Positions 15,001 to 62,478 of a stretch of DNA of 64,000 nt are shown here, piece after piece (positions within the stretch are counted from its first letter, which is position 1; every line of letters starts with the position of its first letter). Position numbers and translations under genes: made by a program. The notes under the pieces are model-generated. The model saw nothing but the letters and a program-made list of their open reading frames with translations. It was not told where the DNA came from and did no database searches. Source of the DNA: Rebecca billardiae RCC1528. Taxonomy: Eukaryota; Protista; Haptophyta. The stretch spans positions 310,001 to 374,000 of the forward strand of contig OZ251240.1 in the NCBI GenBank assembly GCA_965240325.2. The letters run 5' to 3'.

Positions 15001-16264
15001 GCTGCTGCTGCTGCTCGGCCCACTCGCGTGGCGCGAGGCGATTGGCGGGTCCTCGACTCCCATGCTCGCTCCGAGCCGCACTGCATGCCGCGCCGCCGCC
15101 ACTCCTCACGGCCGCGCGCCCACAGGGCTGCGGCTCCGCGACCGAGCCGAAGGGCTGCGGCCGCAGGCCTGCGGCCGCAGCCCTGCGGAAGTAGGCTGAT
15201 GCTGCTGCTCGGCTCAGTCGCGCACCGCGAGGCGAGCGGGCGGGCGGTAGCTGCGGTGCTGATTGGCGCGTCCTCGACGCCCATGCTCGCTCCGAGCCGC
15301 GCTGCATGACGCGCCGCCGCCGCTCCTCACGGCTGCGCGCCCGCAGGGCTGCGGCTCCGCGCCCGAGCCGCAGCCCTGCGGCCGCAGCCCTGCGGCCGCA
15401 GCCCTGCGGCCGCAGGCCTGCGGTGGCCCAGCAGGCTGCTGCTGCTGCTCGGCTCAGTCGCGCGGCGCGAGGCGATTGGCGGGTCCTCGACGCCCATGCT
15501 CGCTCCGAGCGGCGCTGCACGCCGCGCCGCCGCCACTCCTCACGGCCGCGCGCCAGCAGGGCTGCGGCTCCGCGCCCGAGCCGCAGCCCTGCGGCCGCAG
15601 CCCTGCGGCCGCAGGCCTGCGGTGGCCCAGCAGGCTGCTGCTGCTGCTCGGCCCAGTCGCGTGGCGCGAGGCGATTGGCGGGTCCTCGACGCCCATGCTC
15701 GTTCCGAGCCGCACTGCATGCCGCGCCGCCGCCACTCCTCACGGCCGCGCGCCCACAGGGCTGCGGCTCCGCGACCGAGCCGAAGGGCTGCGGCCGCAGG
15801 CCTGCGGCCGCAGCCCTGCGGAAGCAGGCTGATGCTGCTGCTCGGCTCAGTCGCGCAGCGCGAGGCGAGCGGGCGGGCGGTAGCCGCGGTGCTGATTGGC
15901 GCGTCCTCGACGCCCATGCTCACTCCGAGCCGCGCTGCATGACGCGCCGCCGCCGCTCCTCACGGCTGCGCGCCCGCAGGGCTGCGGCTCCGCGCCCGAG
16001 CCGCAGCCCTGCGGCCGCAGCCCTGCGGCCGCAGCCCTGCGGCCGCAGGCCTGCGGTGGCCCAGCAGGCTGCTGCTGCTGCTCGGCTCAGTCGCGCGGCG
16101 CGAGTCGATTGGCGCGTCCTCGACGCCCATGCTCGCTCCGCGCCGCGCTGCACGCCGCGCCGCCGCCACTCCTCACGGCCGCGCGCCCGCAGGGCTGCGG
16201 CTCCGCGCCCGAGCCGCAGCCCTGCGGCCGCAGCCCTGCGGCCGCAGGCCTGCGGCCGCAGGCA
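1..16264. repeat. GC-rich satellite array, left block (continues beyond the window start)
   Basis: Head-to-tail monomers GATTGGCGCGTCCTCGACGCCCATGCTCGCTCCGAGCCGC...CCACTCCTCACGGCCGCGCGCCCGCAGGGCTGCGG...(CCGCAGSCCTGCGG)n TGGCCCAGCAGG(CTG)4CTCGG. Lengths are ~185/199/213/227 bp (14-bp steps), or ~220-222 bp when the GAGCGGGCGGGCGG..GGTGCT insert is present. Confidence 0.98.
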
Positions 16265-19200
16265 CCCCTTACGTATCCAGAGAACATCTCTGTGAGAGAA
16301 CATCTCTGGGCAAGCCAGGCCAGAGATGTTCTCTGGCCGCCAGCCGCCAAAGAACATCTCTCACAGAGAACGTTTTTGGGGCGCGCCAGTGGACCGGGCA
16401 ACGCACGGTGCGCTGGCGCCAGTGGCGACTTGGCGGGATCGGCCATCGCCATCGCGATGGGCATCGCTCCGACGAGAGCGTGGCGTAGCCCGGCGCGGGG
16501 CAGTATGACTGAGAGCGCTAACCGTTCGATGACTACCCAGACGTCAAGACAACCCCATGCCCCCAATCAGCCCGCCCGCCCGCATGCATCACTTCTTGCC
16601 CTGCTTGGGCTTGCTACCAGTCTTGCCGCTGCCCGCGCCGGCTGTCTCGTGTGCGCCGCGGTGGCGCTTCTGCGCGGCCCTCCCCGGTCCGTTCCCGCCC
16701 GGGGGGTTGTGAACAGGCGCAGACGACGCCCCAGCTGCCCCAGCTGCCGTCTGGGCTGGCGCACCCTCAGCTGCTGCATCAACATCGAGCGTCCGCGCCG
16801 CCGACTTGCCCTTGCCGGGCGGCTTGAACTTGTTCATGTGCTGGATGAAGGCTTGCGTGGCCGCATCGTCGCCAGAGAAGCGGCGCGCGAGGAGGCGGGC
16901 AACGCCCACGACTTGCGAGACACGCTCGCTCTGCGAGAAGGAAACCGCCGCAGAGGATGCTGAAGCGCCGCCGCGCTCGCGCGGCGGCGGCGGCGGCATG
17001 CTCATCAGCTTGGCAGTGGCAGCGTCCCGCAGGGCAGCGGTCTGCTTGCGCCAAAGCGGCGCGATGTTCGAGAGGAAGGCCGTCTGCAGGTGCTCGTCCA
17101 GCGCGGCATCCGTGTTCTCCTGCGACCAGTAGTGGTACACGGCGAGCTGGTGACGATCTGCGCGCGCGCGCGCGCACGATCCACGGGGCGCGCCGCGCGG
17201 CCAGCATGTGAGTGTGACCGAGGCGCGGCGAGTGTGAGTGGCCAGCTGATGGGCGTTGCGCAACACCGCGCGCACAGCAGCCACACAGACACACACGTCC
17301 AGGCACGCGCGCGAGCCCCGCAGCAAACCAGCCTCGTGCATGGGCACACTGTGCATGTTTCACCATGCGCGCGCGGTGCGGCGCGTGCGCGCGTGCACGC
17401 GGCCGGCCGCGGCCGCAAGGCGCGCGCCGCCCCGCGCGGCGCACCAACTAGCCCTGTGCATGCAGGCATCTGGCATGAGCACGAGGTGAGCGTGACGATG
17501 TACTCGTGCCGGTCGGCGTGCAGCCCGAGCTCGGTGCTGGCCACGTCCTTCGGAACGGCGTCGTTCTCCGTCGAGAAGCTGCCGGCGGGCGCGGCTGCAG
17601 ACGCCGTGGGCGCAGCAGCGGGCGCCAGCGGCGGCGGCGGCGCGATGTACTTCACGACGAAGCGACGCGCCGCGCCAGCCGTGGGCGGGTCCAGCGGGTT
17701 GACGTTGTACGAGAGCACGCGCGCCGCCTGCGCCTGGACGATGACGAGCGCGTGGGTCGTGAGCAACTTGGACAGCACGTCGCGCACCACCGGCAGAGAA
17801 GATGACGTGATGCAGCCCCTCTTGAGCTGCGCCACCATCGCCTTCTGCGCCAGCTCGACACCGCGCATGATCTCCTTGCGCTCGAGCTTCTTCACGAGCG
17901 CGAGCAGCGAGTCCGAGTTGCGCACGAAGAGCGCCATGGCGCTGTGCCACGCCTCGGCGCGCTGCGTCGAGTGGATGCCGAAGGTGAGGTACTGCCACGT
18001 CCACCGCGCCGCCCACTGCTCCTTGCGCTCGCCGAGGCTAGCCAGCCACGTCAGCGCGAGCGCGCGCTTCTTGGCATCACCGGCCGTGGTCGCGGCGGCC
18101 ATGCCCGTGAGCGCGCGCCAATCCGCGTCGAACTCCGGCCGCCGCTGGACGTCGGAGTCCATGGCGAGGGTCCACCACGCGCGGTTGAAAGCGGCCCAGC
18201 CCGCCTTGTCGCCGGCGAAGAGCGGGTGGATGTGCTTGTAGACGTTCGTCCAGATGTGGTAGATGCAGAGGAGGTGAATGGTGCCGCAGTCGGCAAAGAC
18301 CGACTTGATCGCGGTCGCCATGCTGATGTCGCCGTCCGTGAAGATGACCGCGGGCGGCTCGCGCATGTGCTGGAGGAACTTGGAAAAGGCAAACTCGAAC
18401 GACGGGATCGGATCGGACTCGTCCACCGCGGTGTACCCCAGCACGACCGTGTTGCCCTCCTCGTCGATGGTCACGAACGTGCCGATGTTGAGGCCGTAAC
18501 GGTTCGTGCCGTGCTTGGTGTCGTACAGCAGGACCTTGAAGGGGCCGAGACGCGCCCACCGCTCGTACGCGTCCTCCGCGAGCCAAAAGGACGAGACCAG
18601 CTGGCCCAGCTCGTTCGTGCGCGGCTCAAAGACCAGGCCCGTCTCGCGCTCGCGCTGGATCAGGTACTCCACGACGTTCTGGGCGTCCAGCAGAGCATCC
18701 GCCGGCAGCGGCCGGAGTGAGTTGTACAACTTCTCGTACGTCCACGTCACAGGCAGCCCGCGGTCGATCACCATGCGCGCGCAGTGCTGGTTGATGAAGT
18801 TGACGGAGGCGCCCGACGTTCGCATCTGCTCGGCCGTCTCGAAGATGTCCTTGGGGATGCCGCACTTCTGCTCGCCCGTCATCGCTGCGGCCTCCGCCGC
18901 AGTCTTGATGGGGAGGAGGATGTGAGCGGAGTGCTCCCGACTCCCCGAGGTCGGCACCCAGCCCTCGAGCGTCTCCTCGCACCTCATCTTCCACGAGCAT
19001 TTCGGCTGGTCGTTGGCCCGCTTGACCGTCGCGCGCTCCGTGGCGACGCTCGAGGTGCTGCTCGAGCTGTAGTACTGGTCGACGAAGAGCACCTTGGCGC
19101 CGGCCCTCGTGGTCGGCAGCGTGATGCTGGTGGCCTGTGAGAGCGAGAGTCCGACAGTGAAGCCCCACGCCTTGACCGCCGCGGTGATGCCGGCGAGCGT

Positions 19201-20030
19201 CGGGAACGGGCCGGTCGGAAAGTTCGGAGGCAGCTCCACCCGCTCCTGCAACGCCGTCAGCAGGGGGCGCCGCGTGTCCTGCTTCGCCTTCTCGCCCATC
19301 ACCTCATCTGCTGCCGGCGCCGCAGCGGCCGAGGAAGCCTTCCTGGGCGAGGTGCGCTCCGGCTTCGCCCGACCCGTCGGTTTCTTCTCGTACAGGTACT
19401 CCGGGGTCGTGAAGCGCGATGCCGGGGGGCAGGTCGTCGGTTCCACGCCTGGCGCGTGAGCCGCAGCAGGCGGAGCCACCGCATCGAGAACAGCGGGCGG
19501 CGCGGCTGACGCCAGCAGCCGGTCGATGCCAGATGGGGCAGCAGCACGGGCATCCGTGCCCAGAGCCACCTCACCAAGGGCACTCGCCAGCGCGCGGGGT
19601 CTCGCATGCGCCGCTGCAGGCCCGGCATCCATCGAAGCCGCGTGCGCCGCGGGAAGCTCCGGCTCGGGCGCGGGCGCGGGCGCGGCGGCGGCGGCGGCGG
19701 CTGTCACCGCCGACAGTGCGGGCTGCGCGCGGCCGGAGGAGAGGCCGCCAAACATACTCTTGAGCCGCTCCATGCTTGCAGGGCTGCCCTGCGCGCGAGA
19801 GCGATTGGGGGGTTGCTGCGCTGCGGCTCGGGGAGCGGAGGGCGCAAGCTCTCGAGGCTCGCGCGGACTCGCGCGGCGCTCCCAGCCCGGGCGCGCCAGC
19901 CTCACGTGGCGCGCCCCAAAAACGTTCTCTGTGAGAGATGTTCTTTGGCGGCTGGCGGCCAGAGAACATCTCTGGCCTGGCTTGCCCAGAGATGTTCTTT
20001 CACAGAGATGTTCTCTGGATACGTAAGGGG
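16265..20030 (-). mobile_element. Mutator-like (MULE) DNA transposon, apparently autonomous
   Basis: 124-bp TIRs at 16265-16388 and 19907-20030 with one mismatch (CCCCTTACGTATCCAGAGAACATCTC...). 9-bp TSD CCGCAGGCA at 16256-16264 and 20031-20039. Internal MULE transposase. Confidence 0.96.
16589..19773 (-). CDS. MULE transposase (DDE + SWIM-like finger); 2 exons, 19773-17445 and 17157-16589
   Basis: Motifs LLYDTKHGTNRYG (D1), PAVIFTDGD (D2), HLLCIYHIW (CxxH), STQRAEAWHS (E) and SWIM-like CSCQMPACTGLVDRH. Inferred intron GTGCGC..GCGCAG at 17444-17158 joins ORFs 17005..20118 and 16589..17356. The start (MERLKS) is inferred. Confidence 0.9.
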
Positions 20031-23000
20031 CCGCAGGCATGCGGTGGCCCAGCAGGCTGCTGCTGCTGCTCGGCCCACTCGCGCGGCGCGAGGCGATTGG
20101 CGCGTCCTCGACGCCCATGCTCGCTACGAGCCGCGCTGCATGACGCGCCGCCGCCGCTCCTCACGGCCTTGCGCCCGCAGGGCTGCGGCTTCGCGCCCGA
20201 GCCGCAGCCCTGCGCCGCAGCCCTGCGGCCGCAGGCCTGCGGAAGCAGGCTGCTGCTGCTGCTCGGCTCAGTCGTGCGGCGCGAGGCGAGCGGGCAGGCG
20301 GGTGGCAGCGGTGCTGATTGGCACGTCCTCGACGCCCATGCTCGCTCCGAGCCGCGCTGCATGCCGCGCCGCCGCCACTCCTCACGGCCGCGCGCCCGCA
20401 GGGCTGCGGCTCCGCGACCGAGCCGCAGGGCTGCGGCCGCAGGCCTGCGACCGCAGCCCTGCGGAAGCAGGCTGATGCTGCTGCTCGGCTCAGTCGCACG
20501 GCGCGAGGCGAGCGGGCGGGCGGGTGGCGGCGGTGCTGATTGGCGCGTCCTCGACGCCCATGCTTGCTCCGAGCCGCGCTGCGTGACGCGCCGCCGCCGC
20601 TCCTCACGGCCGCGCGCCCGCAGGGCTGCGGCTCCGCGCCCGAGCCGCAGCCCTGCGGCCGCAGCCCTGCGGCCGCAGCCCTGCAGCCGCAGGCCTGCGG
20701 TGGCCCAGCAGGCTGCTGCTGCTGCTCGGCTCAGTCGCGCGGCGCGAGACGATTGGCGCGTCCTCGACGCCCATGCTCGCTCCGAGCCGCGCTGCACGCC
20801 GCGCCGCCGCCGCTCCTCACGGCCGCGCGCCCGCAGGGCTGCGGCTCCGCGCCCGAGCCGCAGCCCTGCGGCCGCAGCCCTGCGGCCGCAGGCCTGCGGC
20901 CGCAGGCCTGCGGTGGCCCAGCAGGCTGCTGCTGCTGCTCGGCTCTGTCGCGCGGCGCGAGGCGATTGGCGCGTTCTCGACGCCCATGCTCGCTCCGAGC
21001 CGCACTGCATGCCGCCCCGCCGCCACTCCTCACGGCCGCGCGCCCACAGGGCTGCGGCTCCGCGACCGAGCCGCAGGGCTGCGGCCGCAGGCCTGCGGCC
21101 GCAGCCCTGCGGAAGCAGGCTGCTGCTGCTGCTCGGCTCAGTCGCGCGGCGCGAGGCGAGCGGGCGGGCGGGTGGCAGTGGTGTTGTTTGGCGCGTCTTC
21201 GACGCCCATGCTCGCTCCGAGCCGTGCTGCATGCCGCGCCGCCGCCACTCCTCACGGCCGCGCGCCCGCAGGGCTGCGGCTTCGCGCCCGAGCCGCAGGG
21301 CTGCGGCCGCAGGCCTGCGGCCGCAGGCCTGCGGCTGCAGGCCTGCGGTGGCCCAGCAGGCTGCTGCTCCTGCTCGGCCCACTCGCGCGGCGCGAGGCGA
21401 TTGGCGCGTCTTCGACGCCCATGCTCGCTCCGAGCCGCACTGCATGCCGCGCCGCCGCCGCTCCTCACGGCCGCGCGCCCACAGGGCTGCGGCTCCGCGA
21501 CCGATCCGCAGGGCTGCGGCCGCAGGCCTGCGGCCGCAGCCCTGCGGAAGCAGGCTGATGCTGCTGCTCGGCTCAGTCGTGCGGCGCGAGGCGAGCGGGC
21601 AGGCGGGTGGCAGCGGTGCTGATTGGCACGTCCTCGACGCCCATGCTCGCTCCGAGCCGCGCTGCATGCCGCGCCGCCGCCACTCCTCACGGCCGCGCGC
21701 CCGCAGGGCTGCGGCTCCGCGACCGAGCCGCAGGGCTGCGGCCGCAGGCCTGCGACCGCAGCCCTGCGGAAGCAGGCTGATGCTGCTGCTCGGCTCAGTC
21801 GCACGGCGCGAGGCGAGCGGGCGGGCGGGTGGCGGCGGTGCTGATTGGCGCGTCCTCGACGCCCATGCTTGCTCCGAGCCGCGCTGCATGACGCGCCGCC
21901 GCCGCTCCTCACGGCCGCGCGCCCGCAGGGCTGCGGCTCCGCGCCCGAGCCGCAGCCCTGCGGCCGCAGCCCTGCGGCCGCAGCCCTGCAGCCGCAGGCC
22001 TGCGGTGGCCCAGCAGGCTGCTGCTGCTGCTCGGCTCAGTCGCGCGGCGCGAGGCGATCGGCGCGTCCTCGACGCCCATGCTCGCTCCGAGCCGCACTGC
22101 ACGCCGCGCCGCCGCCGCTCCTCACGGCCGCGCGCCCGCAGGGCTGCGGCTCCGCGCCCGAGCCGCAGCCCTGCGGCCGCAGCCCTGCGGCCGCAGGCCT
22201 GCGGCCGCAGGCCTGCGGTGGCCCAGCAGGCTGCTGCTGCTGCTCGGCTCTGTCGCGCGGCGCGAGGCGATTGGCGCGTTCTCGACGCCCATGCTCGCTC
22301 CGAGCCGCACTGCATGCCGCCCCGCCGCCACTCCTCACTGCCGCGCGCCCACAGGGCTGCGGCTCCGCGACCGAGCCGCAGGGCTGCGGCCGCAGGCCTG
22401 CGGCCGCAGCCCTGCGGAAGCAGGCTGCTGCTGCTGCTCGGCTCAGTCGCGCGGCGCGAGGCGAGCGGGCGGGCGGGTGGCAGTGGTGCTGTTTGGCGCG
22501 TCTTCGACGCCCATGCTCGCTCCGAGCCGTGCTGCATGCCGCGCCGCCGCCACTCCTCACGGCCGCGCGCCCGCAGGGCTGCGGCTTCGCGCCCGAGCCG
22601 CAGGGCTGCGGCCGCAGGCCTGCGGCCGCAGGCCTGCGGCTGCAGGCCTGCGGTGGCCCAGCAGGCTGCTGCTCCTGCTCGGCCCACTCGCGCGGCGCGA
22701 GGCGATTGGCGCGTCTTCGACGCCCATGCTCGCTCCGAGCCGCACTGCATGCCGCGCCGCCGCCGCTCCTCACGGCCGCGCGCCCACAGGGCTGCGGCTC
22801 CGCGACCGATCCGCAGGGCTGCGGCCGCAGGCCTGCGGCCGCAGCCCTGCGGAAGCAGGCTGATGCTGCTGCTCGGCTCAGTCGCGCAGCGCGAGGCGAG
22901 CGGGCAGGCGGGTGGCAGCGGTGCTGATTGGCGCGTCCTCGACGCCCATGCTCGCTCCGAGCCGCGCTGCATGCCGCGCCGCCGCCACTCCTCACGGCCG

Positions 23001-26000
23001 CGCGCCCGCAGGGCTGCGGCTTCGCGCCCGAGCCGCAGCCCTGCGGCCGCAGGCCTGCGGCCGCAGGCCTGCGGTGGCCCAGCAGGCTGCTGCTGCTGCT
23101 CGGGCCAATCGCGCGGCGCGAGGCGATTGGCGCGTCTTCGACGCCCATGCTCGCTCCGAGCCGCACTGCATGCCGCGCCGCCGCCACTCCTCACGGCCGC
23201 GCGCCCACAGGGCTGCGGCTCCGCGACCGAGCCGCAGGGCTGCGACCGCAGGCCTGCGGCCGCAGCCCTGCGGAAGCAGGCTGCTGCTGCTGCTCGGCTC
23301 ACTCGCGCGGCGCGAGGCGATTGGCGCGTCTTCGACGCCCATGCTCGCTCCGAGCCGCACTGCATGCCGCGCCGCCGCCACTCCTCACGGCCGCGCGCCC
23401 ACAGGGCTGCGGCTCCGCGACCGATCCGCAGGGCTGCGGCCGCAGGTCTGCGGCCGCAGCCCTGCGGAAGCAGGCTGATGCTGCTGCTCGGCTCAGTCGC
23501 GCGGCGCGAGGCGAGCGGGCGGGCGGGTGGCCGCGGTGCTGATGGGCGCGTCCTCGACGCCCATGCTCGCTCCGAGCCGCGCTGCACGCCGCGCCGCCGC
23601 CACTCCTCACGGCCGCGCGCCCGCAGGGCTGCGGCTCCGCGCCCGAGCCGCAGCCCTGCGGCCGCAGCCCTGCGGCCGCAGCCCTGCGGCCGCAGGCCTG
23701 CGGTGGCCCAGCAGGCTGCTGCTGCTGCTCGGCCCACTCGCGCGGCGCGAGGCAGTTGGCGCGTCCTCGACGCCCATGCTCGCTCTGAGCCGCACTGCAT
23801 GCCGCGCCGCCGCCACTCCTCACGGCCGCGCGCCCACAGGGCTGCGGCTCCGTGACCGAGCCGCAGGGCTGCGGCCGCAGGCCTGCGGCCGCAGCCCTGC
23901 GGAAGCAGGCTGCTGCTGCTGCTCGGCTCACTCGCGCGGCGCGAGGCGATTGGCGCGTCCTCGACGCCCATGCTCGTTTCGAGCCGCGCTGCACGCCGCG
24001 CCGCCGCCACTCCTCACGGCCGCGCGCCCGCAGGGCTGCGGCTCCGCGCCCGAGCCGCAGCCCTGCGGCCGCAGCCCTGCGGCCGCAGGCCTGCGCTGGC
24101 CCAGCAGGCTGCTGCTGCTGCTCGGCTCAGTCGCGCGGCGAGCGGGCGGGCGGCTGGCGGTGGTGCTGGATGGCGCGTCCTCGACGCCCATGCTCGCTCC
24201 GAGCCGAGCTGCACGCCGCGCCGCCGCCACTCCTCACGGCCGCGCGCCCGCAGGGCTGCGGCTTCGCGCCCGAGCCGCAGCCCTGCGGCGCAGGCCTGCG
24301 GCCGCAGGCCTGCGGAAGCAGGCTGCTGCTGCTGCTCGGCTCAGTCGTGCGGCGCGAGGCGAGCGGGCGGGCGGGTGGCAGCGTTGCAGATTGGCTTGTC
24401 CTCGACGCCCATGCTCGCTCCGAGCCGCGCTGCATGCCGCGCCGCCGCCACTCCTCACGGCCGCGCGCCCGCAGGGCTGCGGCTTCGCGCCCGAGCCGCA
24501 GCCCTGCGGCGCAGGCCTGCGGCCGCAGGCCTGCGGAAGCAGGCTGCTGCTGCTGCTCGGCTCAGTCGCGCGGCGAGCGGGCGGGTGGCTGGCGATGGTG
24601 CTGATTGGCACGTCCTCGCCGCCCATGCTCGCTCCGAGCCGCGCTGCACGCCTCGCCGCCGCCACTCCTCACGGCCGCGCGCCCGCAGGGCTGCGGCTTC
24701 GCGCCCGAGCCGCAGCCCTGCGGCGCAGGCCTGCGGCCGCAGGCCTGCGGAAGCAGGCTGCTGCTGCTGCTCGGCTCAGTCGTGCGGCGCGAGGCGAGCG
24801 GGCAGGCGGGTGGCAGTGGTGCTGATTGGCGCGTCCTCGACGCCCATGCTCGCTCCGAGCCGCGCTGCATGCCGCGCCGCCGCCACTCCTCACGGCCGCG
24901 CGCCCGCAGGGCTGCGGCTCCGCGCCCGAGCCGCAGCCCTGCGGCCGCAGCCCTGCGGCCGCAGCCCTGCGGCCGCAGGCCTGCGGTGGCCCAGCAGGCT
25001 GCTGCTGCTGCTCGGCTCACTCGCGCGGCGCGAGGCGATTAGCGCGTCCTCGACGCCCATGCTCGCTCCGAGCCGCGCTGCACGCCGCGCCGCCGCCACT
25101 CCTCACGGCCGCGCGCCCGCAGGGCTGCGGCTCCGCGCCCGAGCCGCAGCCCTGCGGCCGCAGCCCTGCGGACGCAGGCCTGCGGTGGCCCAGCAGGCTG
25201 CTGCTGCTGCTCGGCTCAGTCGCGCGGCGAGCGTGCGGGCGGCTGGCGGTGGTGCTGGACGGCGCGTCCTCGACGCCCATGCTCGCTCCGAGCCGCGCTG
25301 GACGCCGCGCCGCCGCCACTCCTCACGGCCGCGCGCCCGCAGGGCTGCGGCTCCGCGCCCGAGCCGCAGCCCTGCGGCCGCAGGCCTGCGGTGGCCCAGC
25401 AGGCTGCTGCTGCTGCTCGGTTCACTCGCGCGGCGCGAGGCGATTGGCGCGTCCTCGACGCTTATGCTCGCTCCGAGCCGCACTGCATGCCGCGCCGCCG
25501 CCACTCCTCACGGCCGCGCGCCCACAGGGCTGCGGCTCCGCGCCCGAGCCGCAGCCCTGCGGCCGCAGGCCTGCGGCCGCAGGCCTGCGGTGGCCCAGCA
25601 GGCTGCTGCTGCTGCTCGGCTCAGTCGCGCAGCACGCGGCGAGCGGGCGGGCGGCTGGCAGCGGTGCTGATTGGCGCGTCCTCGACGCCCATGCTCGCTC
25701 CGAGCCGCGCTGCATGCCTCGCCGCTGCCACTCCTCACGGCCGCGCGCCCGCAGGGCTGCGGCTCCGCGCAAGAGCCGCAGCCCTGCGGCCGCAGCCCTG
25801 CGGCCGCAGCCCTGCAGCCGCAGGCCTGCGGTGGCCCAGCAGGCTGCTGCTGCTGCTCGGCCCACTCGCGCGGCGCGAGGCGATTGGCGCGTCCTCGACG
25901 CCCATGCTCGCTTCGAGCCGCGCTGCACGCCGCGCCGCCGCCACTCCTCACGGCCGCGCGCCCGCAGGGCTGCGGCTTCGCGCCCGAGCCGCAGCCCTGC

Positions 26001-29000
26001 GGCGCAGGCCTGCGGCCGCAGGCCTGCGGAAGCAGGCTGCTGCTGCTGCTCGGCTCAGTCGTGCGGCGCGAGGCGAGCGGGCGGGCGGGTGGCAGCGTTG
26101 CAGATTGGCTTGTCCTCGACGCCCATGCTCGCTCCGAGCCGCGCTGCATGCCGCGCCGCCGCCACTCCTCACGGCCGCGCGCCCGCAGGGCTGCGGCTTC
26201 GCGCCCGAGCCGCAGCCCTGCGGCGCAGGCCTGCGGCCGCAGGCCTGCGGAAGCAGGCTGCTGCTGCTGCTCGGCTCAGTCGCGCGGCGAGCGGGCGGGT
26301 GGCTGGCGATGGTGCTGATTGGCACGTCCTCGCCGCCCATGCTCGCTCCGAGCCGCGCTGCACGCCTCGCCGCCGCCACTCCTCACGGCCGCGCGCCCGC
26401 AGGGCTGCGGCTTCGCGCCCGAGCCGCAGGCCTGCGGCCGCAGCCCTGCGGCCGCAGGCCTGCGGTGGCCCAGCAGGCTGCTGCTGCTGCTCGGCTCAGT
26501 CGCGCGGCGAGCGGGCGGGTGGCTGGCGATGGTGCTGATTGGCACGTCCTCGCCGCCCATGCTCGCTCCGAGCCGCGCTGCACGCCTCGCCGCCGCCACT
26601 CCTCACGGCCGCGCGCCCGCAGGGCTGCGGCTTCGCGCCCGAGCCGCAGCCCTGCGGCGCAGGCCTGCGGCCGCAGGCCTGCGGAAGCAGGCTGCTGCTG
26701 CTGCTCGGCTCAGTCGTGCGGCGCGAGGCGAGCGGGCAGGCGGGTGGCAGTGGTGCTGATTGGCGCGTCCTCGACGCCCATGCTCGCTCCGAGCCGCGCT
26801 GCATGCCGCGCCGCCGCCACTCCTCACGGCCGCGCGCCCGCAGGGCTGCGGCTCCGCGCCCGAGCCGCAGCCCTGCGGCCGCAGCCCTGCGGCCGCAGCC
26901 CTGCGGCCGCAGGCCTGCGGTGGCCCAGCAGGCTGCTGCTGCTGCTCGGCTCACTCGCGCGGCGCGAGGCGATTAGCGCGTCCTCGACGCCCATGCTCGC
27001 TCCGAGCCGCGCTGCACGCCGCGCCGCCGCCACTCCTCACGGCCGCGCGCCCGCAGGGCTGCGGCTCCGCGCCCGAGCCGCAGCCCTGCGGCCGCAGCCC
27101 TGCGGACGCAGGCCTGCGGTGGCCCAGCAGGCTGCTGCTGCTGCTCGGCTCAGTCGCGCGGCGAGCGTGCGGGCGGCTGGCGGTGGTGCTGGACGGCGCG
27201 TCCTCGACGCCCATGCTCGCTCCGAGCCGCGCTGGACGCCGCGCCGCCGCCACTCCTCACGGCCGCGCGCCCGCAGGGCTGCGGCTCCGCGCCCGAGCCG
27301 CAGCCCTGCGGCCGCAGGCCTGCGGTGGCCCAGCAGGCTGCTGCTGCTGCTCGGTTCACTCGCGCGGCGCGAGGCGATTGGCGCGTCCTCGACGCTTATG
27401 CTCGCTCCGAGCCGCACTGCATGCCGCGCCGCCGCCACTCCTCACGGCCGCGCGCCCACAGGGCTGCGGCTCCGCGCCCGAGCCGCAGCCCTGCGGCCGC
27501 AGGCCTGCGGCCGCAGGCCTGCGGTGGCCCAGCAGGCTGCTGCTGCTGCTCGGCTCAGTCGCGCAGCACGCGGCGAGCGGGCGGGCGGCTGGCAGCGGTG
27601 CTGATTGGCGCGTCCTCGACGCCCATGCTCGCTCCGAGCCGCGCTGCATGCCTCGCCGCTGCCACTCCTCACGGCCGCGCGCCCGCAGGGCTGCGGCTCC
27701 GCGCAAGAGCCGCAGCCCTGCGGCCGCAGCCCTGCGGCCGCAGCCCTGCAGCCGCAGGCCTGCGGTGGCCCAGCAGGCTGCTGCTGCTGCTCGGCCCACT
27801 CGCGCGGCGCGAGGCGATTGGCGCGTCCTCGACGCCCATGCTCGCTTCGAGCCGCGCTGCACGCCGCGCCGCCGCCACTCCTCACGGCCGCGCGCCCGCA
27901 GGGCTGCGGCTTCGCGCCCGAGCCGCAGCCCTGCGGCGCAGGCCTGCGGCCGCAGGCCTGCGGAAGCAGGCTGCTGCTGCTGCTCGGCTCAGTCGTGCGG
28001 CGCGAGGCGAGCGGGCGGGCGGGTGGCAGCGTTGCAGATTGGCTTGTCCTCGACGCCCATGCTCGCTCCGAGCCGCGCTGCATGCCGCGCCGCCGCCACT
28101 CCTCACGGCCGCGCGCCCGCAGGGCTGCGGCTTCGCGCCCGAGCCGCAGCCCTGCGGCGCAGGCCTGCGGCCGCAGGCCTGCGGAAGCAGGCTGCTGCTG
28201 CTGCTCGGCTCAGTCGCGCGGCGAGCGGGCGGGTGGCTGGCGATGGTGCTGATTGGCACGTCCTCGCCGCCCATGCTCGCTCCGAGCCGCGCTGCACGCC
28301 TCGCCGCCGCCACTCCTCACGGCCGCGCGCCCGCAGGGCTGCGGCTTCGCGCCCGAGCCGCAGGCCTGCGGCCGCAGCCCTGCGGCCGCAGGCCTGCGGT
28401 GGCCCAGCAGGCTGCTGCTGCTGCTCGGCTCAGTCGTGCAGCGCGCGGCGAGCGGGCGGGCGGGTGGCAGCGGTGCTGATTGGCGCGTCCTCGCCGCCCA
28501 TGCTTGCTCCGAGCCGCGCTGCATGCCTCGCCGCCGCCACTCCTCACGGCCGCGCGCCCGCAGGGCTGCGGCTTCGCGCCCGAGCCGCAGCCCTGCGGCC
28601 GCAGGCCTGCGGTGGCCCAGCAGGCTGCTGCTGCTGCTCGGCTCAGTCGCGCGGCGTGAGGCGAGCGGGCAGGCGGGTGGCCAGTGCTGATTGGCACGTC
28701 CTCGCCGCCCATGCTCGCTCCGAGCCGCGCTGCATGCCTCGCCGCCGCCACTCCTCACGGCCGCGCGCCCGCAGGGCTGCGGCTTCGCGCCCGAGCCGCA
28801 GCCCTGCGGCCGCAGCCCTGCGGCCGCAGGCCTGCGGTGGCCCAGCAGGCTGCTGCTGCTGCTCGGCTCAGTCGCGCGGCGCGAGGCGAGCGGGCAAGCA
28901 GGTGGCCGGTGCTGATTGGCACGTCCTCGCCGCCCATGCTCGCTCCGAGCCGCGCTGCATGCCTCGCCGCCGCCACTCCTCACGGCCGCGCGCCCGCAGG

Positions 29001-30266
29001 GCTGCGGCTTCGCGCCCGAGCCGCAGCCCTGCAGCCGCAGCCCTGCGGCCGCAGGCCTGCGGTGGCCCAGCAGGCTGCTGCTGCTGCTCGGCTCAGTCGC
29101 GCGGCGCGAGGCGAGCGTTCAGGCGGGTGGCCGGTGCTGATTGGCACGTCCTCGACGCCCATGCTCGCTCCGAGCCGCGCTGCACGCCGCGCCGCCGCCA
29201 CTCCTCATGGCCGCGCGCCCGCAGGGCTGCGGCTTCGCGCCCGTGCCGCAGCCCTGCGGCCGCAGGCCTGCGGTGGCCCAGCAGGCTGCTGCTGCTGCTC
29301 GGCTCAGGCGCGCGGCGCGAGGCGAGCGGGCAAGCAGGTGGCCGGTGCTGATTGGCGCGTCCTCGCCGCCCATGCTCGCTCCGAGCCGCGCTGCACGCCG
29401 CGCCGCCTCCACTCCTCACGGCCGCGCGCCCGCAGGGCTGCGGCTTCGCGCCCGAGCCGCAGCCCTGCGGCCGCAGGCCTGCGGTGGCCCAGCAGGCTGC
29501 TGCTGCTGCTCGGCTCAGTCGCGTTGCGCGAGGCGAGCGTTCAGGCGGGTGGCCGGTGCTGATTGGCACGTCCTCGACGCCCATGCTCGCTCCGAGCCGC
29601 GCTGCATGTCCCGCCGCCGCCACTCCTCACGGCCGCGCGCCCGCAGGGCTGCGGCTCCGCGCCCGAGCCGCAGCCCTGCGGCCGCAGGCCTGCGGCCGCA
29701 GGCCCTGCGGCTGCAGGCCTGCGGTGGCCCAGCAGGCTGCTGCTGCTGCTCGGCTCAGTCGCGCAGCACGCGGCGAGCGGGAGCGCCTGTGGCGTCGGTA
29801 CTGGGTGGCACGTCGTCGCCGCCCATGCTCGCTCTGCGCCGTGCTGTATGCCGCGCCGCCGCTACTCCTCACGGCCGCGCGCCCGCAGGGGGCTGGCAGG
29901 GCTGCGGCTTCGCGCCCGAGCCGCAGCCCTGCGGCCGCAGGCCTGCGGCCGCAGGCCCTGCGGCTGCAGGCCTGCGGTGGCCCAGCAGGCTGCTGCTGCT
30001 GCTCGGCTCAGTCGCGCAGCACGCGGCGAGCGGGAGCGCCTGTGGCGTCGGTACTGGGTGGCACGTCGTCGCCGCCCATGCTCGCTCTGAGCCGTGCTGT
30101 ATGCCGCGCCGCCGCTACTCCTCACGGCCGCGCGCCCGCAGGGGGCTGGCAGGGCTGCGGCTTCGCGCCCGAGCCGCAGCCCTGCGGCCGCAGGCCTGCG
30201 GTGGCCCAGCAGGCTGCTGCTGCTGCTCGGCTTAGTCGCGCGGCGCGAGGTGAGCGGGCGGGCGGG
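20031..30266. repeat. GC-rich satellite array, right block, more diverged toward its edge
   Basis: Same monomer, resuming in register after the MULE TSD. Variant monomers increase from ~28.4 kb, and two strongly diverged 245-bp units lie at ~29.63-30.12 kb. Confidence 0.97.
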
Positions 30267-30634
30267 TTGTGTCGTTACTAGCAGTCGTGCTCTCACTGCT
30301 TTTCTGGTTGGCGGCCATCGCTGTTACTGTACAGTATTGAATCTTTGACTGTACCGAGTAACGTATCTCGCCTGCCTAAGATGTGTGCGTCTCTACTGTA
30401 TTGCTTTCGCACACAGCTTACCGGCGGTAGCAGGCGGACGTGCCACGTCCGTCCAACCCAGCGAGACCTCCATTCGCCCGCCCTCCACTTTCTGGCCCAC
30501 CCGCTCTTGGAGGGAGTGCACTCCACGCGCACGCGCCTGGCTCGCAGTCTCTATTGGCGACAGTGACACGTGTCGACGTCTATACCACTTCACGCGCCAC
30601 ACGCTGTTGCCGTTCGCCTCGATCTGCGTGCTCC

Positions 30635-32575
30635 ATGAGCTCCCTGCCGGATGAGTGCACACCTGCCAGGCCTCAGGCGCGCCGGGGGCATGCCAAAGCT
30701 GGATGGCGCCGTCCCAAGGGCGGCACGCACGACCCGCGCTTGCGCGCGAATCGGATCGCCAACGAAGAGCGCCTACGCGCTGGCATGCTCCTCTACCGTG
30801 CTCGCATGGAGTCGCAATCATCCGAGCTGGACGCGAGTGTCCGCTTGACGCTGGCGGGTGCGCCCGCGCTCGCGTTTGGTCGGCAGCACACGGAGGAGGA
30901 CGCGATGGCGCACAGCATCGGTGCAGGTCGCAGCCACCCGCAACGTCTCCCTGAGCATGTTTCTGAGCCGTTGGCACCTTGGTCCAGAGCTATCCGAACG
31001 ACGGCCGCCACTGCGCTCCCACCGCCGGCGCAGCCACCGACGACACGCGTGCACGCGCTCTCGAATCAGATGGCAGCCGAAGCGCTCCCGTTCGTGCCCC
31101 CGCTGAGGCTGGCGGAGGCGTGCCGCGTATGCCGGAGGGCTGCGCTACCGTCGAACGTCGTCGTGCGCACATGCCTTGCTTGCAGGCTGCCAACCTGCTC
31201 TGCATGCTGCCGCATCCCTGCGTCCACGGTGGGGGAGCAGTCAGCTCGCGCCGTGCTGGAGGAGGAGCCACTCTGTGACGCGTGCTTCACGGCTTGGCAA
31301 GGCGCAGGGCGTCTTCAGTACTCCGCCGCTGCCGAGCCCCTGCCGCGCGCGCGCTCCATCCGTGTGCACGAGCTGTACGCCGGCTCGCTCTCGCTGACTG
31401 TGCTCTTCCACGCGCTGTGGAAGCGCGGCCAGACGATCCCTGTCGTCTGTGCGCATGCGAGTGAGCAGTCGCAGTACTGCCGCGAGCTGCTCTGGCCGGC
31501 GATGGCGAAGCTGGGGGGCTATCGGCATGGGGAGGTCTCGCGACCACTTGTGGTCTCCAGCGACGCGCACGGCTGCCCTGCCCAGCGCAGATGGCGCGTC
31601 GGAGACGGCGCCGAGGTGCTTGTCGGCGGGAACCCGTGCGTGCACCATTCGAGAGCAAACACCGGCCGCAGGCCGCCGCCGGATGACCCGGCCGCGTGCC
31701 TCGACGCGCAGGCGGTCATGCGCGAGGCGAGCTCGAAGTGCGTGCTCATCATCGAGAATGTCTCGTGCTACTTCTCGGACCCGCGCTGGCTGTCGGCTGT
31801 CGCCGAGCTGTGCGGCAACGGCTGGGTGTGCCTCACCGGCAGCCTCGGATCCGGGGCGGGTGGGGCGGACGCACTCAGCGTGCCGCGCGACACGGCGGGT
31901 GTGGAGGCGCGCACGCGCCACATCTTCATCGCGGTGCGGCGGGGGGTGCTTCCGCGCAAGCGCATGCACGCCGACGCTGCGCGCACCGCGTTCGCCGAGG
32001 AGGTCCAGATCATGTGCGCCGCCGCGCGCAAGCAGCCGCCGCGCGACGCGATCCTGTGCGAGGACGCGGACTCGCTCGTCGCGGATGGCATCGTGGATGC
32101 TGCGGGCAAGCGCGAGCTGACCAAAGCGCTGACGGTCAAGCAGCAGGCCTACGTCGATGCCGCGCGCGAGGCTTACCCTGAGCGCGCGGGCGATCTCATC
32201 GTCGAGATCAGCATGAGCGCGCAGCACTCGACAGGAGCACTGCGCGCCAACGAGGAGCTGTGCACGATCCGCACGGAGAATCAGTACTACTCGACGCGGC
32301 TGTGCCGGCGGCTGTCCTGGCTTGAGATCGCGCGCGCGCACGAGCTGCCGCCTGTCATCATCCGCGCTGCTGCCATCGAGGCTGCCAAGAGCGCGGTGCT
32401 GCGCGGGGCGGGCGCGCTCCCGAAGGGCGTCACGCCCTCGGACGCGACGATGCACACTGCAGCCGCGTGTCGGCGAATGGTGGGCAACAGCTTCCACTCG
32501 CGCATCATGCTCGTGTACGTCAGCGCGCTCGTGCGCTACCTTCCGCACCTCTTCGCACAGATGCCCCCGCCCTGA
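30635..32575 (+). CDS. C5 cytosine DNA methyltransferase-like protein with N-terminal Cys8 (FYVE/PHD/ADD-like) zinc finger, intronless
   Basis: C5-MTase motifs in canonical order: I VHELYAGSLS, II HASE, IV VGGNPCVHHS, VI IIENV, VIII EARTRHIFIAVR, IX RRLSWLEIARAH, X RRMVGNSF. Finger C-x2-C-x13-C-x2-C-x4-C-x2-C-x22-C-x2-C at 31121-31285. Start uncertain (ATGs at 30635, 30785, 30905, 31070). Confidence 0.85.
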   Translation: MSSLPDECTPARPQARRGHAKAGWRRPKGGTHDPRLRANRIANEERLRAGMLLYRARMESQSSELDASVRLTLAGAPALAFGRQHTEEDAMAHSIGAGRSHPQRLPEHVSEPLAPWSRAIRTTAATALPPPAQPPTTRVHALSNQMAAEALPFVPPLRLAEACRVCRRAALPSNVVVRTCLACRLPTCSACCRIPASTVGEQSARAVLEEEPLCDACFTAWQGAGRLQYSAAAEPLPRARSIRVHELYAGSLSLTVLFHALWKRGQTIPVVCAHASEQSQYCRELLWPAMAKLGGYRHGEVSRPLVVSSDAHGCPAQRRWRVGDGAEVLVGGNPCVHHSRANTGRRPPPDDPAACLDAQAVMREASSKCVLIIENVSCYFSDPRWLSAVAELCGNGWVCLTGSLGSGAGGADALSVPRDTAGVEARTRHIFIAVRRGVLPRKRMHADAARTAFAEEVQIMCAAARKQPPRDAILCEDADSLVADGIVDAAGKRELTKALTVKQQAYVDAAREAYPERAGDLIVEISMSAQHSTGALRANEELCTIRTENQYYSTRLCRRLSWLEIARAHELPPVIIRAAAIEAAKSAVLRGAGALPKGVTPSDATMHTAAACRRMVGNSFHSRIMLVYVSALVRYLPHLFAQMPPP

Positions 32576-32766
32576 CAATATGTAAGACCGCGTTCCGCGA
32601 CTCAGGTTAGTATAGCAGCATCATATCAGATATATCGTCATCATCGTCATCATCGTCTCTACTGACTGTACTCTCGGTCTCTTGTCTAGTTGTCTCGATC
32701 GATCGATCTCTTGATGATGTCTAGCAGAGTCTATTATTATATTATTATATTTATAATTATATATAT

Positions 32767-35410
32767 ATGGCGGGCCGTAGGTCCGCCCCTTGTAGTGCCC
32801 GGGAAAAAGATAAGAAAAAGAAAAGGAAAAAAGAAAATCGCCTCGCAAAGAAAAGAAAATCGCCTCGCTCACTGCCGGGTCGCTTCGCTCACTACCGGGC
32901 GCCCCCGCAGCTCCCACTGGGGACGCTCGGCCGAAAACCATACAGGCTGGTCTCACCAGGAACTTCCCGAGGCTTTGGATTTTTTTTTCAGTCCCACTGC
33001 GTCTGCGGAAAATTCTCGATGGCGCCATTAAATCGGCCGCATCGAGAGCTCTCCGACGAGGGGTCGCACGCCTCTGTCCGCCCCGCCGTTGTCGAGATTC
33101 AAACCCCCACCCCCCTGCAAAAAATGAACGGCGCGCGATCTCGGTCCGTGCGACCCCTAGTGGTGTTGTTCACACGGTTGCCCGTACCCCAAGCCCCTCT
33201 CCTCATCCCCACCCTCGCTGTAGCACTGAAACATTGCGTCGTTGTTCTCGCCCGCAGAAGCCGCCGAGCGTTGCGGGTCAACGTGGGACCTGGCATGAGT
33301 GACAGGTGTCTTCATGTCCCACAGCGCGTCTCTCCGATGCTGTCGAGGTATGTGGGCCTCATCGCGCTCGTTGCAACGTCCTTCCTGCGCCTCCCCACCT
33401 GTATCAGTGCCTGACGATGTTGCTTGGAGCACACTCAACCCGCCTTGCCGCCGCACTGTTCAGGGCGGAACTCCTTCGCAATGTTGAAGCGTGCGGCTGC
33501 CCTTGACAGACGTACGTAGGCTCTCGCACCCCCCGCTTCCACTGCGACAGATTCGAATACCTGCTGCGAGTGAGCCAACTGCGACGAAGTGCAATGTGCT
33601 CGTCGTGTTCGTTCGGAGCCGTTCGAGCGGCGCGCAAGTGACAAGTGCATCTGGCGAGGTCCCACCAACAGAGGCAGGGGCTTTGGCAGTAACCACAGCG
33701 ATCATGGAACGGCTCGCGCGGGCGCAGTCATCAAGCAGTGCGCCATGCTCCGCCTCCGCGCGGGCCAGGTCCGCGCGTGGCCGACCTCGTGGTGATGGAT
33801 GCCGCCTGGGCGTCCGAAGCGGCAGAAGCCCGCCGGACTGCGGAAACCCCGACGAAACCTCAGTTCAGCGCCACTTCAGACTGCTCGGCCCACTGTGAAA
33901 ACCACTGTGACGGCGCCTCCGCGGCGGAGCGCCGGGCACGAGGTGAGCGACGCGCGCGGCTCCGCGGACAATTTTGTCGGGGACTAGACCCACGATGCGA
34001 GCGATCGTACTCAGCCGATTCCCCGTGCTCGCCCGCCGCGAGCGCGGACACGTCGGCAGCGCTCGGGAAGTTCTTGGTGAGACCAGCCTGTATGGCGCCT
34101 GGCGCGGAGCGCGTGGGCCGCGCGCGCCGAATCCAACGCCGGCGCGGACATCATGAGGGGATTCCAGAGACGTGTTTTCGCCCGATTCGCGATTGCTGCC
34201 CTCGTCGTCTCGCGTGCAGGTCGAACGGGGCCCAAATCGACCCGTTTGATGCGGTACGCTCGGCGCGTCGACACGATCGTGCGACCTGGGGCGATCCTCG
34301 CCCGACGTGCACGTCGAAAGCTCGCACCGGCCATAGCATCATGCGCTGCGCACGATGACCGCCTCGCGCGATCCACCGTTGCGCGTCGGGCTCGGTGCGA
34401 GAAAGCCCTCATCACGAGGCGTCTCGCGGGCGGGAAGCGCCATCGCACGCGACGCAAGATTTTAGATTTGGCGCGGCCTTCTGAACTCGATCGCCGAAAT
34501 CCGCGCACCGGACTCAGCCCATTGCTCGCGGTCCGGTCCCTCAGCCGAAGCCCACGTCCGGCCTGCATGGCGTCGACGGTGACCAATGCGACGGAAGCGC
34601 AGCGCCAACGGCGTACGACGCGCTGCGGACGCACCTCCCGGGTCTGTCGCCGTGGCAGCAACCGCGTCATCGCGAGTTGGCGACCCTCGCCGCAGCGCGA
34701 CACAGACAAGCCCGTGATGCCATCCGCAGAGAGATGAAACGTCGAGCATGCAACATCGCCGCGCCATGGCCTCGTCCATGGCGCAGGCGCTGCGGGACGA
34801 GGCGGAAGTCGTCACGCCGGTGACGGATGCGCTGCGATTCGTGTGCTCGCGTGAGCAGCGCTTGCCCACTCTCGATCGCGAGTGCACACGCTGTCGCTGT
34901 GTGCGCGCGCGCGCACAACCAACAGCTCCTCGTGCCGCCGAGCACGCGAGCGCCAGACCTGTCGAAGATGCGAAGAGCGACGACCGCGTGAACGTCAACG
35001 CGCTCGTGCTCAGCGTGGTGGCCGTGTACGACGTCAACGCGACCTGCGCCGAGCCCACGGCGGCGAGGCGCTCGATTACGCCATCGCGGTCGATATGCGG
35101 CACATACTCAGCAACGCGTATCCGCGCTCGCGCGGAGCAACGGGCTACCCGCCCCGCCCCGCGTGCTGCACATTCCCTCGTGGGTGTGGGCCTCGCTGAT
35201 GCGCATACAATACTCTAAGAGTACAGACCGTGAAACATGTGTACATCACGTCGGGGAGCCAACTTCACGTGTCACTGGTCCTTGCACTCGACTGTCCGTC
35301 ACCCACGGCCACGAGCGAATGTGGAAAGACGCGAACCCGCAAAGGATACATTGTCATTGCGACAGCACTGGCACGGCCCGCCGACCCCCGCCCGCCAGGG
35401 CACAGTTTAT
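32767..35410 (-). mobile_element. Hairpin-ended non-autonomous element, copy 1 (Helitron/Helentron-like layout), carrying a nested insertion
   Basis: Reverse-complement homology to 49480-50708. Terminal hairpin GGCGGRCC-TAC-GGCCCGCC. TA-rich tracts on both sides. No TSD seen. Confidence 0.7.
32943..34090. mobile_element. Tc1/mariner-like non-autonomous TIR element
   Basis: 29-bp TIRs CAGGCTGGTCTCACCARGAACTTCCCGAG (32943-32971 and 34062-34090), TA on both sides, and absent from the homologous copy at ~50,555. Confidence 0.85.
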
Positions 35411-36073: not shown

Positions 36074-36138
36074 TAGTACTCGCCTGCCTGGGCTGTGTGC
36101 GTCTCTTATTCTTAGTAAACTGTACTCGTCTGATATAT

Positions 36139-36507
36139 GTGGGGTTATTGGTACAATAACTGATTGTCTAAGAGGACGACAAGAACGCCGGGCGCCAGCG
36201 CCGCTCATCAGCCACATCGCCCTCTACCAGACCATCGCCTCAAAGGGCGCTGCTCCCGGACAAACAGTCTGTCCGGGTTTTTCTGCCGCCCAGGAGATCG
36301 GTTTCCGGCGCCGGCCTCTGCCACCTGCTTCGCCAGGCGCGGCGTGCGAGGTGGCTCCAGCCAAGCTCGTCCTGCGTCGCCGGCGGCGGCGGCTCGCACG
36401 CGGGTGGCGCGTCGCGTGCACCGACCAACATCTTTCGGCAACGCAGCGGTAAGCAACGCTCCGCATCGCGCCCCCTCGCGCTTCGGGCCACCGCCTCTTC
36501 TCTCTCT
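36139..36507 (+). mobile_element. Truncated copy of the split-direct-repeat element (A repeat plus start of the internal region)
   Basis: GTGGGGTTATTGGTACAATAAC...TTTCGGCAAC plus ~65 bp matching the sequence after A1 of 36612-38371. Preceded by ATATAT. Confidence 0.75.
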
Positions 36508-36511
36508 ACGT

Positions 36512-38371
<1,860 letters not shown>

Positions 38372-38395
38372 ATATATATATATATATATATATAT

Positions 38396-38808
<413 letters not shown>

Positions 38809-42859: not shown

Positions 42860-43161
42860 GCAGAGCGCGAGGCTGCGGCCGGGTGGCGATTTGAGACCGG
42901 GCGTCGGGCGAGGCGCGAACGCAAGGTAAGTTCCCCCGGCCGTCGTCGCCAAGCGGGGGGTTGGGCCAAGGGGTGCAACACTGCACTGCGAAGCGTCCGG
43001 TGCTCCCGGAACCACTCGCTCGCCCAATTTCTTACGCGCCGCCATCGTGGCGGACGCCGTTGAATCGTCGCCGAAGAAAAAGCAGCGCTGGCTTCGGAGG
43101 CTCGGGGCTCGAGCAGATTGTGAGCCCGACGGCGGCGCCCGCGGCTGCGCTGGGGTAGAGC

Positions 43162-46611: not shown

Positions 46612-46651
46612 CGTGTCACCGGCACAGCGTCGTGCGGTCGTTGCCTTGTCT

Positions 46652-49383: not shown

Positions 49384-49479
49384 ACTGGCCTCTCGGACGC
49401 TTGCCCGTTGCATACCACGTCGTTCTGTATCTCGCCTGCCTGAGCTGTGTGCGTCTCTTATTCTTAGTAAACTGTAATA

Positions 49480-62400: not shown

Positions 62401-62478
<78 letters not shown>

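Follow-up and report, generated by a model that had tools for sequence, protein, structure and literature searches.

The 64,000-nt stretch of Rebecca billardiae RCC1528 DNA analysed here (contig OZ251240.1, positions 310,001 to 374,000; hereafter the window) contains a gene, at 30635-32575 on the plus strand, whose predicted product joins a FYVE-like zinc finger to a cytosine-5 (C5) methyltransferase domain. This gene probably encodes a live orphan DNA cytosine-5 methyltransferase (DNMT) with the canonical covalent Cys mechanism and a family-specific cofactor loop, the FYVE-derived finger serving as a targeting or partner-binding module. Judged from its sequence, the protein starts with a basic N-terminus of low conservation, followed by a FYVE-like finger that has lost the phosphoinositide-binding residues and then by a complete C5-methyltransferase domain. 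Enzyme activity, DNA as the substrate and any targeting are what we infer. In the mechanism that we propose, the target cytosine would be flipped out and attacked at C6 by the motif IV Cys while being held by the Glu of motif VI and the Arg residues of motif VIII, and the methyl group would come from S-adenosyl-methionine, held in a pocket with the family-specific motif I. The finger would direct the enzyme or bind a partner and would not be a lipid binder.

The open reading frame (ORF) is unbroken from ATG to stop codon and encodes 646 aa (Table 1). Its coding signal is clear from the G+C content at third and second codon positions (GC3 0.83 vs GC2 0.56), and codon periodicity is strongest from ~31190, with GC3 at 0.85-0.92 across ~31190 to 32390. 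We note that long ORFs arise in all frames of such high-GC DNA, for example one of 445 codons on the minus strand (31241-32578); a spurious-ORF reading of the plus-strand frame was ruled out by its homologues and its codon periodicity. The coding sequence lacks an intron, because a 596-aa relative (P0001; 54% identity, E=5e-166) aligns colinearly with residues 98-644. We regard it as a real and unbroken nuclear gene without introns, from a eukaryote whose DNA is rich in GC and poor in introns. The original prediction, made from the letters of the window, had both its coordinates and its lack of introns right. An exact look-up of the protein sequence returned no record.

Motifs I, II, IV, VI, VIII, IX and X of C5 methyltransferases follow each other in the canonical order. 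Motifs VIII and IX are separated by a variable target-recognition region, and the protein terminates 30 residues past motif X. Across the three full-length members of the family, which share 31-55% identity, the invariant elements include E-L-(F/Y)-A-G, the motif II Glu, Pro-Cys-Val, V-L-I-x-E-N-V, R-x-R and G-N. The catalytic Cys (IV), the Glu of ENV (VI) and the Arg-x-Arg (VIII) are accordingly unchanged across the intact relatives. The motif I loop reads Y/F-A-G-S/L-L instead of F-x-G-x-G, the second Gly being substituted in every member; because the variant is common to all of them, it is a family trait and not a lesion of this copy. The ordered motifs and the atypical motif I lacking its second Gly had both been described in the original prediction, and our comparison extends the latter to every relative.

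Profile searches point to the same domain. The PADLOC profile PDLC00033, for the Druantia DNA cytosine methylase DruM, matches the window protein over motifs IV-VIII (E=4e-5) and four of the six family members searched (best E=5.3e-8), and two more type II methyltransferase profiles match alongside it. PHROG DNA-methyltransferase families 116 and 363 match 4/6 and 3/6 members, with best E-values of 6.8e-5 and 1.3e-4, respectively; the whole of P0001 reaches E=1.1e-4 and 2e-4 against these two. The general Pfam model for the domain, PF00145, gave a weak match to one relative, P0002 (E=0.046, 13.6 bits vs a gathering cut-off of 22).

We prepared two AlphaFold2 models from a shallow family alignment, one of 497 residues (mean predicted local distance difference test score, pLDDT, 49.5) and one of a 215-residue core (mean pLDDT 57.1). 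In these low-confidence models the predicted secondary structure alternates strand and helix, as in a Rossmann-type methyltransferase. When the 497-residue model was compared to the PDB with Foldseek, nearly all of its top 48 matches were C5 DNA methyltransferases, including DNMT1, MET1, DNMT5, DNMT3, Dcm, M.HhaI, M.MpeI, M.HaeIII and DNMT2. PDB entry 8yf3, an enzyme of the C5-methyltransferase fold that uses carboxy-S-adenosyl-methionine, was also among the fold matches. The core model matched MET1 best in the PDB (E=1.9e-3, prob 0.93), followed by DNMT1; in the viral library BFVD its best match was a Halobacterium phage protein, the phiH cytosine-5 methyltransferase (E=2.3e-4, prob 0.99), trailed by many further cytosine methyltransferases.

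Several observations weigh against a live C5 methyltransferase. With mean pLDDT values this low and Foldseek TM-scores of at most 0.43, the fold evidence is only qualitative. PF00145 did not match the window protein in Pfam at E up to 1. No methyltransferase was returned for the whole protein by NCBIfam or by a phmmer search of the PDB, nor by PDB searches with family alignments, either full-length or restricted to motifs I-VIII; NCBIfam was equally negative for all family members. The replacement of the second motif I Gly throughout the family means that cofactor binding cannot be assumed from the sequence. At the N-terminus, the ATG at 30635 is a predicted start, and the first 140 residues are barely conserved. 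Finally, three of the six relative loci described below are degraded or truncated, which shows that the family is dispensable.

Despite the silence of these standard resources, we accept the C5-methyltransferase assignment on profiles, folds and residue conservation. The motifs amount to more than chance, because matches to cytosine-methylase hidden Markov models and fold matches agree. The predicted protein is best filed in the C5 methyltransferase superfamily as a divergent member that scores below the Pfam threshold and departs from the usual motif I glycine loop.

The second recognizable module lies immediately before this domain. Its Cys pairs are at residues 163/166, 180/183, 188/191 and 214/217, with a ninth Cys directly after residue 191, and the resulting spacing, C-x2-C ... 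C-x2-C-x4-C-x2-C ... C-x2-C, is that of FYVE domains; the pairs are retained in P0001. We built a finger-only profile from the three full-length members and searched it against the PDB at E up to 10. Four of its six matches are FYVE domains, namely Leishmania LM5-1 (1z2q; borderline, E=0.003), Hrs (E=0.097) and two EEA1 entries (E=1.5 and 4.6). Like these FYVE domains, the window finger has four C-x2-C pairs, eight Cys in all, and ends with the C-D-x-C-[FYA] element. Unlike them, it scores below the Pfam cut-off and lacks the WxxD, R(R/K)HHCR and R-V-C motifs, which are missing from P0001 too; an H-R-C-x-x-C-G remnant is found only in P0003, the other intact relative. Because WxxD, the basic patch and R-V-C are missing, binding of phosphatidylinositol 3-phosphate by the finger is not expected on sequence grounds. 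An eight-Cys finger with FYVE-like spacing and no basic RHHCR patch is what the original prediction had read from the letters. In Pfam, FYVE (PF01363) was reached by one family member, under the gathering cut-off (E=0.0041), and the window finger itself matched only FYVE_2 (E=2.1).

We compared this architecture to those of known C5 methyltransferases. Prokaryotic and phage enzymes (M.HhaI type, DruM, phiH) have the same ten-motif order, the same Pro-Cys, E-N-V and R-x-R residues and, likewise, a target-recognition region of ~130 residues between motifs VIII and IX. Only profiles of the DruM and PHROG 116/363 type reach significance for the window family, and its best viral fold match is phiH; PDB members of this type were not matched by sequence profile. 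Unlike these enzymes, the window protein is eukaryotic, to judge from its codon usage and surroundings, and has a zinc finger within an N-terminal extension of 240 residues; it lacks the second Gly of motif I and has no restriction or defence partner genes.

Among eukaryotic enzymes, DNMT1 and MET1 are the best PDB fold matches (TM ~0.4, low-confidence models) with no match at the sequence level, and the RFTS, CXXC, BAH and chromo domains of DNMT1, MET1 and CMT were not found in the window protein by Pfam. DNMT3 also places a Cys-rich zinc module N-terminal to its C5-methyltransferase domain; however, the window finger matches FYVE and not ADD or PHD, none of the PWWP, ADD or UBA domains of DNMT3 and DRM accompanies it, and the catalytic domain is not detectably closer to that of DNMT3. 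The C-terminal SNF2-type ATPase of DNMT5 is absent as well, and no Pfam match was found for it. Overall, Pfam identified no BAH, RFTS, CXXC, PWWP, ADD or SNF2 domain in the 646-aa protein. Because the defining accessory domains or motifs are absent, the protein is none of DNMT1, DNMT2, DNMT3 and DNMT5, in line with the earlier view that its architecture fits no known DNMT cleanly. With no named relative, it is consistent with an orphan eukaryotic DNMT. Published orphans are lineage-restricted, patchy, often lost and outside DNMT1/2/3/4/5/6 (PMC12344493), as the window family appears to be; it differs from them in its conserved finger and in that no transposable element (TE) or viral context was found.

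To define the family, we ran an exhaustive phmmer scan of 1.84 billion representative proteins, which also returned domain-only fragments. It yielded seven relatives at six loci, all from metagenome or SRA assemblies and none with an NCBI accession. The environmental contigs behind them belong to JGI 3300017818, 3300009450, 3300009451, 3300009469 and 3300009474, ENA ERZ27313046, SRR30872636 and SRR24667913. Two loci are intact, three are degraded or truncated and one is cut by a contig end. The intact ones encode P0001 (L001/L002/L004/L005; 596 aa, 54% identity to the window protein) and P0003 (L003; 895 aa, 32% identity), the latter with a longer N-terminus and the same order of finger and methyltransferase domain. 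The contig-end locus (L007) comes from the same run as L003 and holds only the C-terminal part. At the first broken locus (L006/L008/L009) the coding region lies in two frames and the C-terminal part is gone. The second (L010-L012), at 80-88% nucleotide identity to the L001 gene, is split into four pieces in three frames with deletions. The truncated locus (L013-L016) retains the finger and the start of the domain.

All three damaged groups derive from one JGI sample series (samples 3300009450, 3300009451, 3300009469 and 3300009474 for L008, L010 and L013). Two of them, L008 and L013, have a homologous upstream flank in common, with ORFs lacking a known domain. Beside the degraded relative at L010, a gene for a KAP-family P-loop NTPase or DUF6079-like protein lies on the opposite strand (2-1672, minus).

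Further searches added no member. No relative was found among IMG/VR viral contigs, by tblastn against phage records or in a metagenome scan with the single protein, and the same metagenome scan with the family alignment recovered only the P0001 locus again. Homologue searches with the whole protein, the family alignment and region 236-445 returned none; Ala/Arg-rich words probably swamp the candidates. We conclude that the family is tiny, has a patchy distribution and is often in decay, although at least three lineages keep it intact. Seven relatives among 1.84 billion representatives, all environmental, agree with the earlier description of the gene as lineage-specific.

Decay of this kind raises the alternative that the window protein is itself a relic or pseudo-enzyme, acquired from a bacterium, a phage or a giant virus, as has been proposed for other orphan DNMTs, with its frame still open but without cofactor binding or methylation, and decaying like its relatives. 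No member retains the usual glycine loop of motif I, the best sequence profiles are of prokaryotic or phage type (PADLOC DruM, PHROGs) and not the general Pfam model, half of the relative loci are broken or truncated, and the family is extremely rare and patchy; orphan DNMTs are, moreover, described as prone to lateral acquisition, and at least one as unexpressed (PMC12344493). However, the window copy and two relatives are full-length, with every catalytic residue invariant at 31-55% identity, and the window frame shows strong codon periodicity. The motif I variant is conserved and not random, and the finger-plus-domain architecture has persisted despite this divergence, as would be expected if function were under selection. 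We consider a relic unlikely.

A second alternative is that the gene is cargo, carried by a transposon or an endogenised virus and methylating DNA for the benefit of that element, as documented for the TE-borne SymbioLINE DNMTs and for virus-derived DNMTs (PMC12344493). Some features of the surroundings speak for this. The 8.7 kb between the satellite and the next ordinary gene (38978) are gene-poor and repeat-rich, and a non-coding dispersed repeat that matches no protein family begins 190 bp past the stop codon. A 28-nt motif occurs four times in the window vs none expected by chance (30367-30394, 36079-36106 and 49431-49458 on the plus strand, 60706-60733 on the minus strand), and its first copy sits ~240 bp upstream of the ATG, within the spacer that separates the gene from the satellite. 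Among the relatives, the three damaged copies differ from one another but come from a single sample series, and two of them have the homologous upstream flank noted above.

Other findings speak against it. No reverse transcriptase, integrase, transposase or capsid-type protein is encoded in 30.3-38.9 kb, and no ORF in 32.6-36 kb belongs to a Pfam family. The TE debris that the original prediction placed downstream is thus present as a dispersed repeat with a nested element inside it, with no transposon protein detected there. A search for terminal inverted or long terminal repeats around the gene found no significant direct or inverted repeats that pair across it, only the 28-nt motif match. 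The gene is single-copy within the window, whereas DNMTs of the SymbioLINE type occur in many copies in a unit with TE enzymes, none of which is encoded in this interval. Flanks common to the window and any relative were not found; tblastx of the relative loci against the window gave only short, scattered high-scoring segment pairs of 8-60 aa, mostly at 25-50% identity, which we put down to composition. GC3 of the gene (~0.83) lies within the range of neighbouring host ORFs (0.78-0.97). The gene is not part of a recognisable mobile element, contrary to the earlier suggestion that one bears it, and with IMG/VR also negative we regard cargo as improbable.

The 28-nt motif may be the end of a repeat family. 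Three of its four copies extend to ~46 nt, their placement with respect to genes follows no consistent pattern across the four sites, and Rfam gave no match for the motif.

The satellite next to the gene invites a third alternative, put forward in the original prediction, in which a satellite-boundary methylation system places the enzyme at the array edge since it methylates the CpG-dense satellite or adjacent TEs. The array begins at window base 1, not 452, and is therefore >30 kb long. It is 79% GC with 16-17 CpG per 100 bp. Its monomers are 199-227 bp (classes of 213, 220-222, 199 and 227 bp, mostly 213 and 220-222, from 121 anchor sites), with a higher-order period of ~435 bp. Its last monomer ends at 30267, which leaves 367 bp to the ATG, and the earlier estimate of ~370 bp was accurate.

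Proximity to at least 30 kb of such sequence is one point in favour of this idea, and mutation patterns supply another: when 119 monomers are aligned, one or more transitions occur in 50% of CpG columns vs 27% of the remaining C/G columns (odds ratio 2.7, p=0.004). This excess is a weak hint of CpG hypermutability, as the effect is small and the monomers are related, and it does not implicate the methyltransferase gene in any methylation, nor would it single out that gene. The observed/expected CpG ratio is 1.05 in the satellite and 1.2-1.4 in genes, and CpG is depleted nowhere. A trans-acting enzyme need not be encoded beside its target. No satellite lies in the 0.7-4 kb of upstream flank available for the relatives, whose contigs are short, assemblies breaking at satellites. 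We accordingly judge a satellite-boundary system very improbable: the gene adjoins the satellite by position only. We also observed palindrome-rich GCAGCCCTGCGGC-type segments in each satellite monomer.

That the protein is an RNA (tRNA) cytosine-5 methyltransferase of the DNMT2 kind is scarcely credible: DNMT2 has the same ten-motif order and its structures are among the fold matches, and the substrate of orphan DNMTs is not predictable (PMC12344493), but DNMT2 consists of the catalytic domain only, the window protein has no C-F-T, the DNMT2-specific motif, in its target-recognition region (between motifs VIII and IX), the 240-residue N-terminal extension with its finger is unlike DNMT2, and the best profile matches are DNA cytosine methylases.

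A live orphan DNA methyltransferase would bear on how such enzymes are counted. The published orphan set was collected with PF00145 at E<1e-4 and consists mostly of proteins without companion domains (PMC12344493); another DNMT survey screened with PF00145 at E=1 (PMC9998398). The window protein falls under both thresholds and offers a concrete case of a methyltransferase family, with its catalytic residues all kept, that PF00145 surveys would miss. We raise only tentatively, as a possibility we hold to be doubtful, that FYVE-like-finger DNMTs are a previously unrecognised functional family of eukaryotic cytosine methyltransferases overlooked by such surveys; if so, some protist lineages scored as DNMT-free may still make 5-methylcytosine (5mC).

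The cofactor pocket might likewise have a different shape owing to the Gly replacement that all members share in motif I. We read the pairing of a FYVE-like finger with a C5 methyltransferase as new, a full-text literature search having found no paper that combines FYVE, DNMT and cytosine methyltransferase. If active, the enzyme would represent an independent solution to targeting a C5 methyltransferase and could account for 5mC in an organism in which surveys scored no DNMT; an inactive one would show how orphan DNMTs decay.

Table 1. Features of the window, numbered from its first base; residues are those of the 646-aa protein. TRF, Tandem Repeats Finder.
Feature	Position	Strand	Description	Evidence
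Finger plus C5-methyltransferase gene	30635..32575	+	Intact, single-exon, 646 codons + stop	ORF, coding signal, relatives
N-terminal region	30635..31096	+	Arg/Ala/Pro-rich, little conserved, weaker codon periodicity, predicted start codon	
Zinc finger	31118..31285	+	Eight-Cys (nine with doubled Cys), cross-brace type, FYVE-like spacing, no PI3P-binding basic patch	
C5 cytosine methyltransferase-like domain	31340..32572	+		Motifs, profiles, fold matches
Motif I	31367-31390	+	Residue 245	
Motif II (Glu)	about 31454-31468	+	Residues 274-278	
Motif IV (Pro-Cys)	31625-31639	+	Residues 331-335	
Motif VI (E-N-V)	31748-31762	+	Residues 372-376	
Motif VIII (R-x-R)	31910-31927	+	Residues 426-431	
Target-recognition region	31928-32305	+	Between motifs VIII and IX	
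T-I-R-T element		+	Residue 544	
Motif IX	32306-32350	+	Residue 558	
Motif X (G-N)	32480-32494	+	Residue 616	
Satellite	1..30267	.	GC-rich, runs off left edge of window, interrupted by transposon 16265-20030	TRF, anchor sites, composition
MULE-type DNA transposon	16265..20030	-	Inside satellite; neighbour, not part of methyltransferase gene	Terminal inverted repeats, PF10551
Unique spacer	30268..30634	+	367 bp, last satellite monomer to ATG	
Dispersed repeat, first copy	32767..35410	+	Three pieces, non-coding, 190 bp past stop	No protein family matched
Nested element	32938-34095		~1.16 kb with 34-nt inverted ends, inside first dispersed repeat copy	
Local duplicated blocks	36133..38806	.	86-93% identity over 300-530 nt, stretches of 94-228 nt at 99-100%	
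RSN1/OSCA-type channel	38978-43207	-		
Sel1 repeat + MYND finger protein	45091-46749	-		
Dispersed repeat, second copy	49480..50708	-	Uninterrupted site	97% identity over 948 nt
Protein kinase	52131-53186	-		
RCC1 repeat protein	53228-55225	+		
Polycystin-type channel	60887-63349	+		

The remaining features of the window are those of a very GC-rich, intron-poor eukaryotic region, with long ORFs encoding ordinary eukaryotic domains to the right of 39 kb. Rfam and tRNA scans were empty. The MULE-type transposon within the satellite has terminal inverted repeats of 124 nt and encodes a MULE transposase domain (PF10551, E=1.3e-12) in a minus-strand open frame at 17008-20160, 1051 codons long; because its terminal repeats are 99% complementary, the insertion looks recent. 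The duplicated blocks to the left of the channel gene at 38978 are bordered by (TA)n tracts of up to ~100 nt and, together with the dispersed repeat, take up the gene-poor interval. (TA)-rich tracts also follow the methyltransferase gene, both in the window and in the relative L002. A 108-nt tandem repeat detected by TRF at 45488-46380 corresponds to the DNA of ten Sel1 repeats in the minus-strand Sel1/MYND gene.

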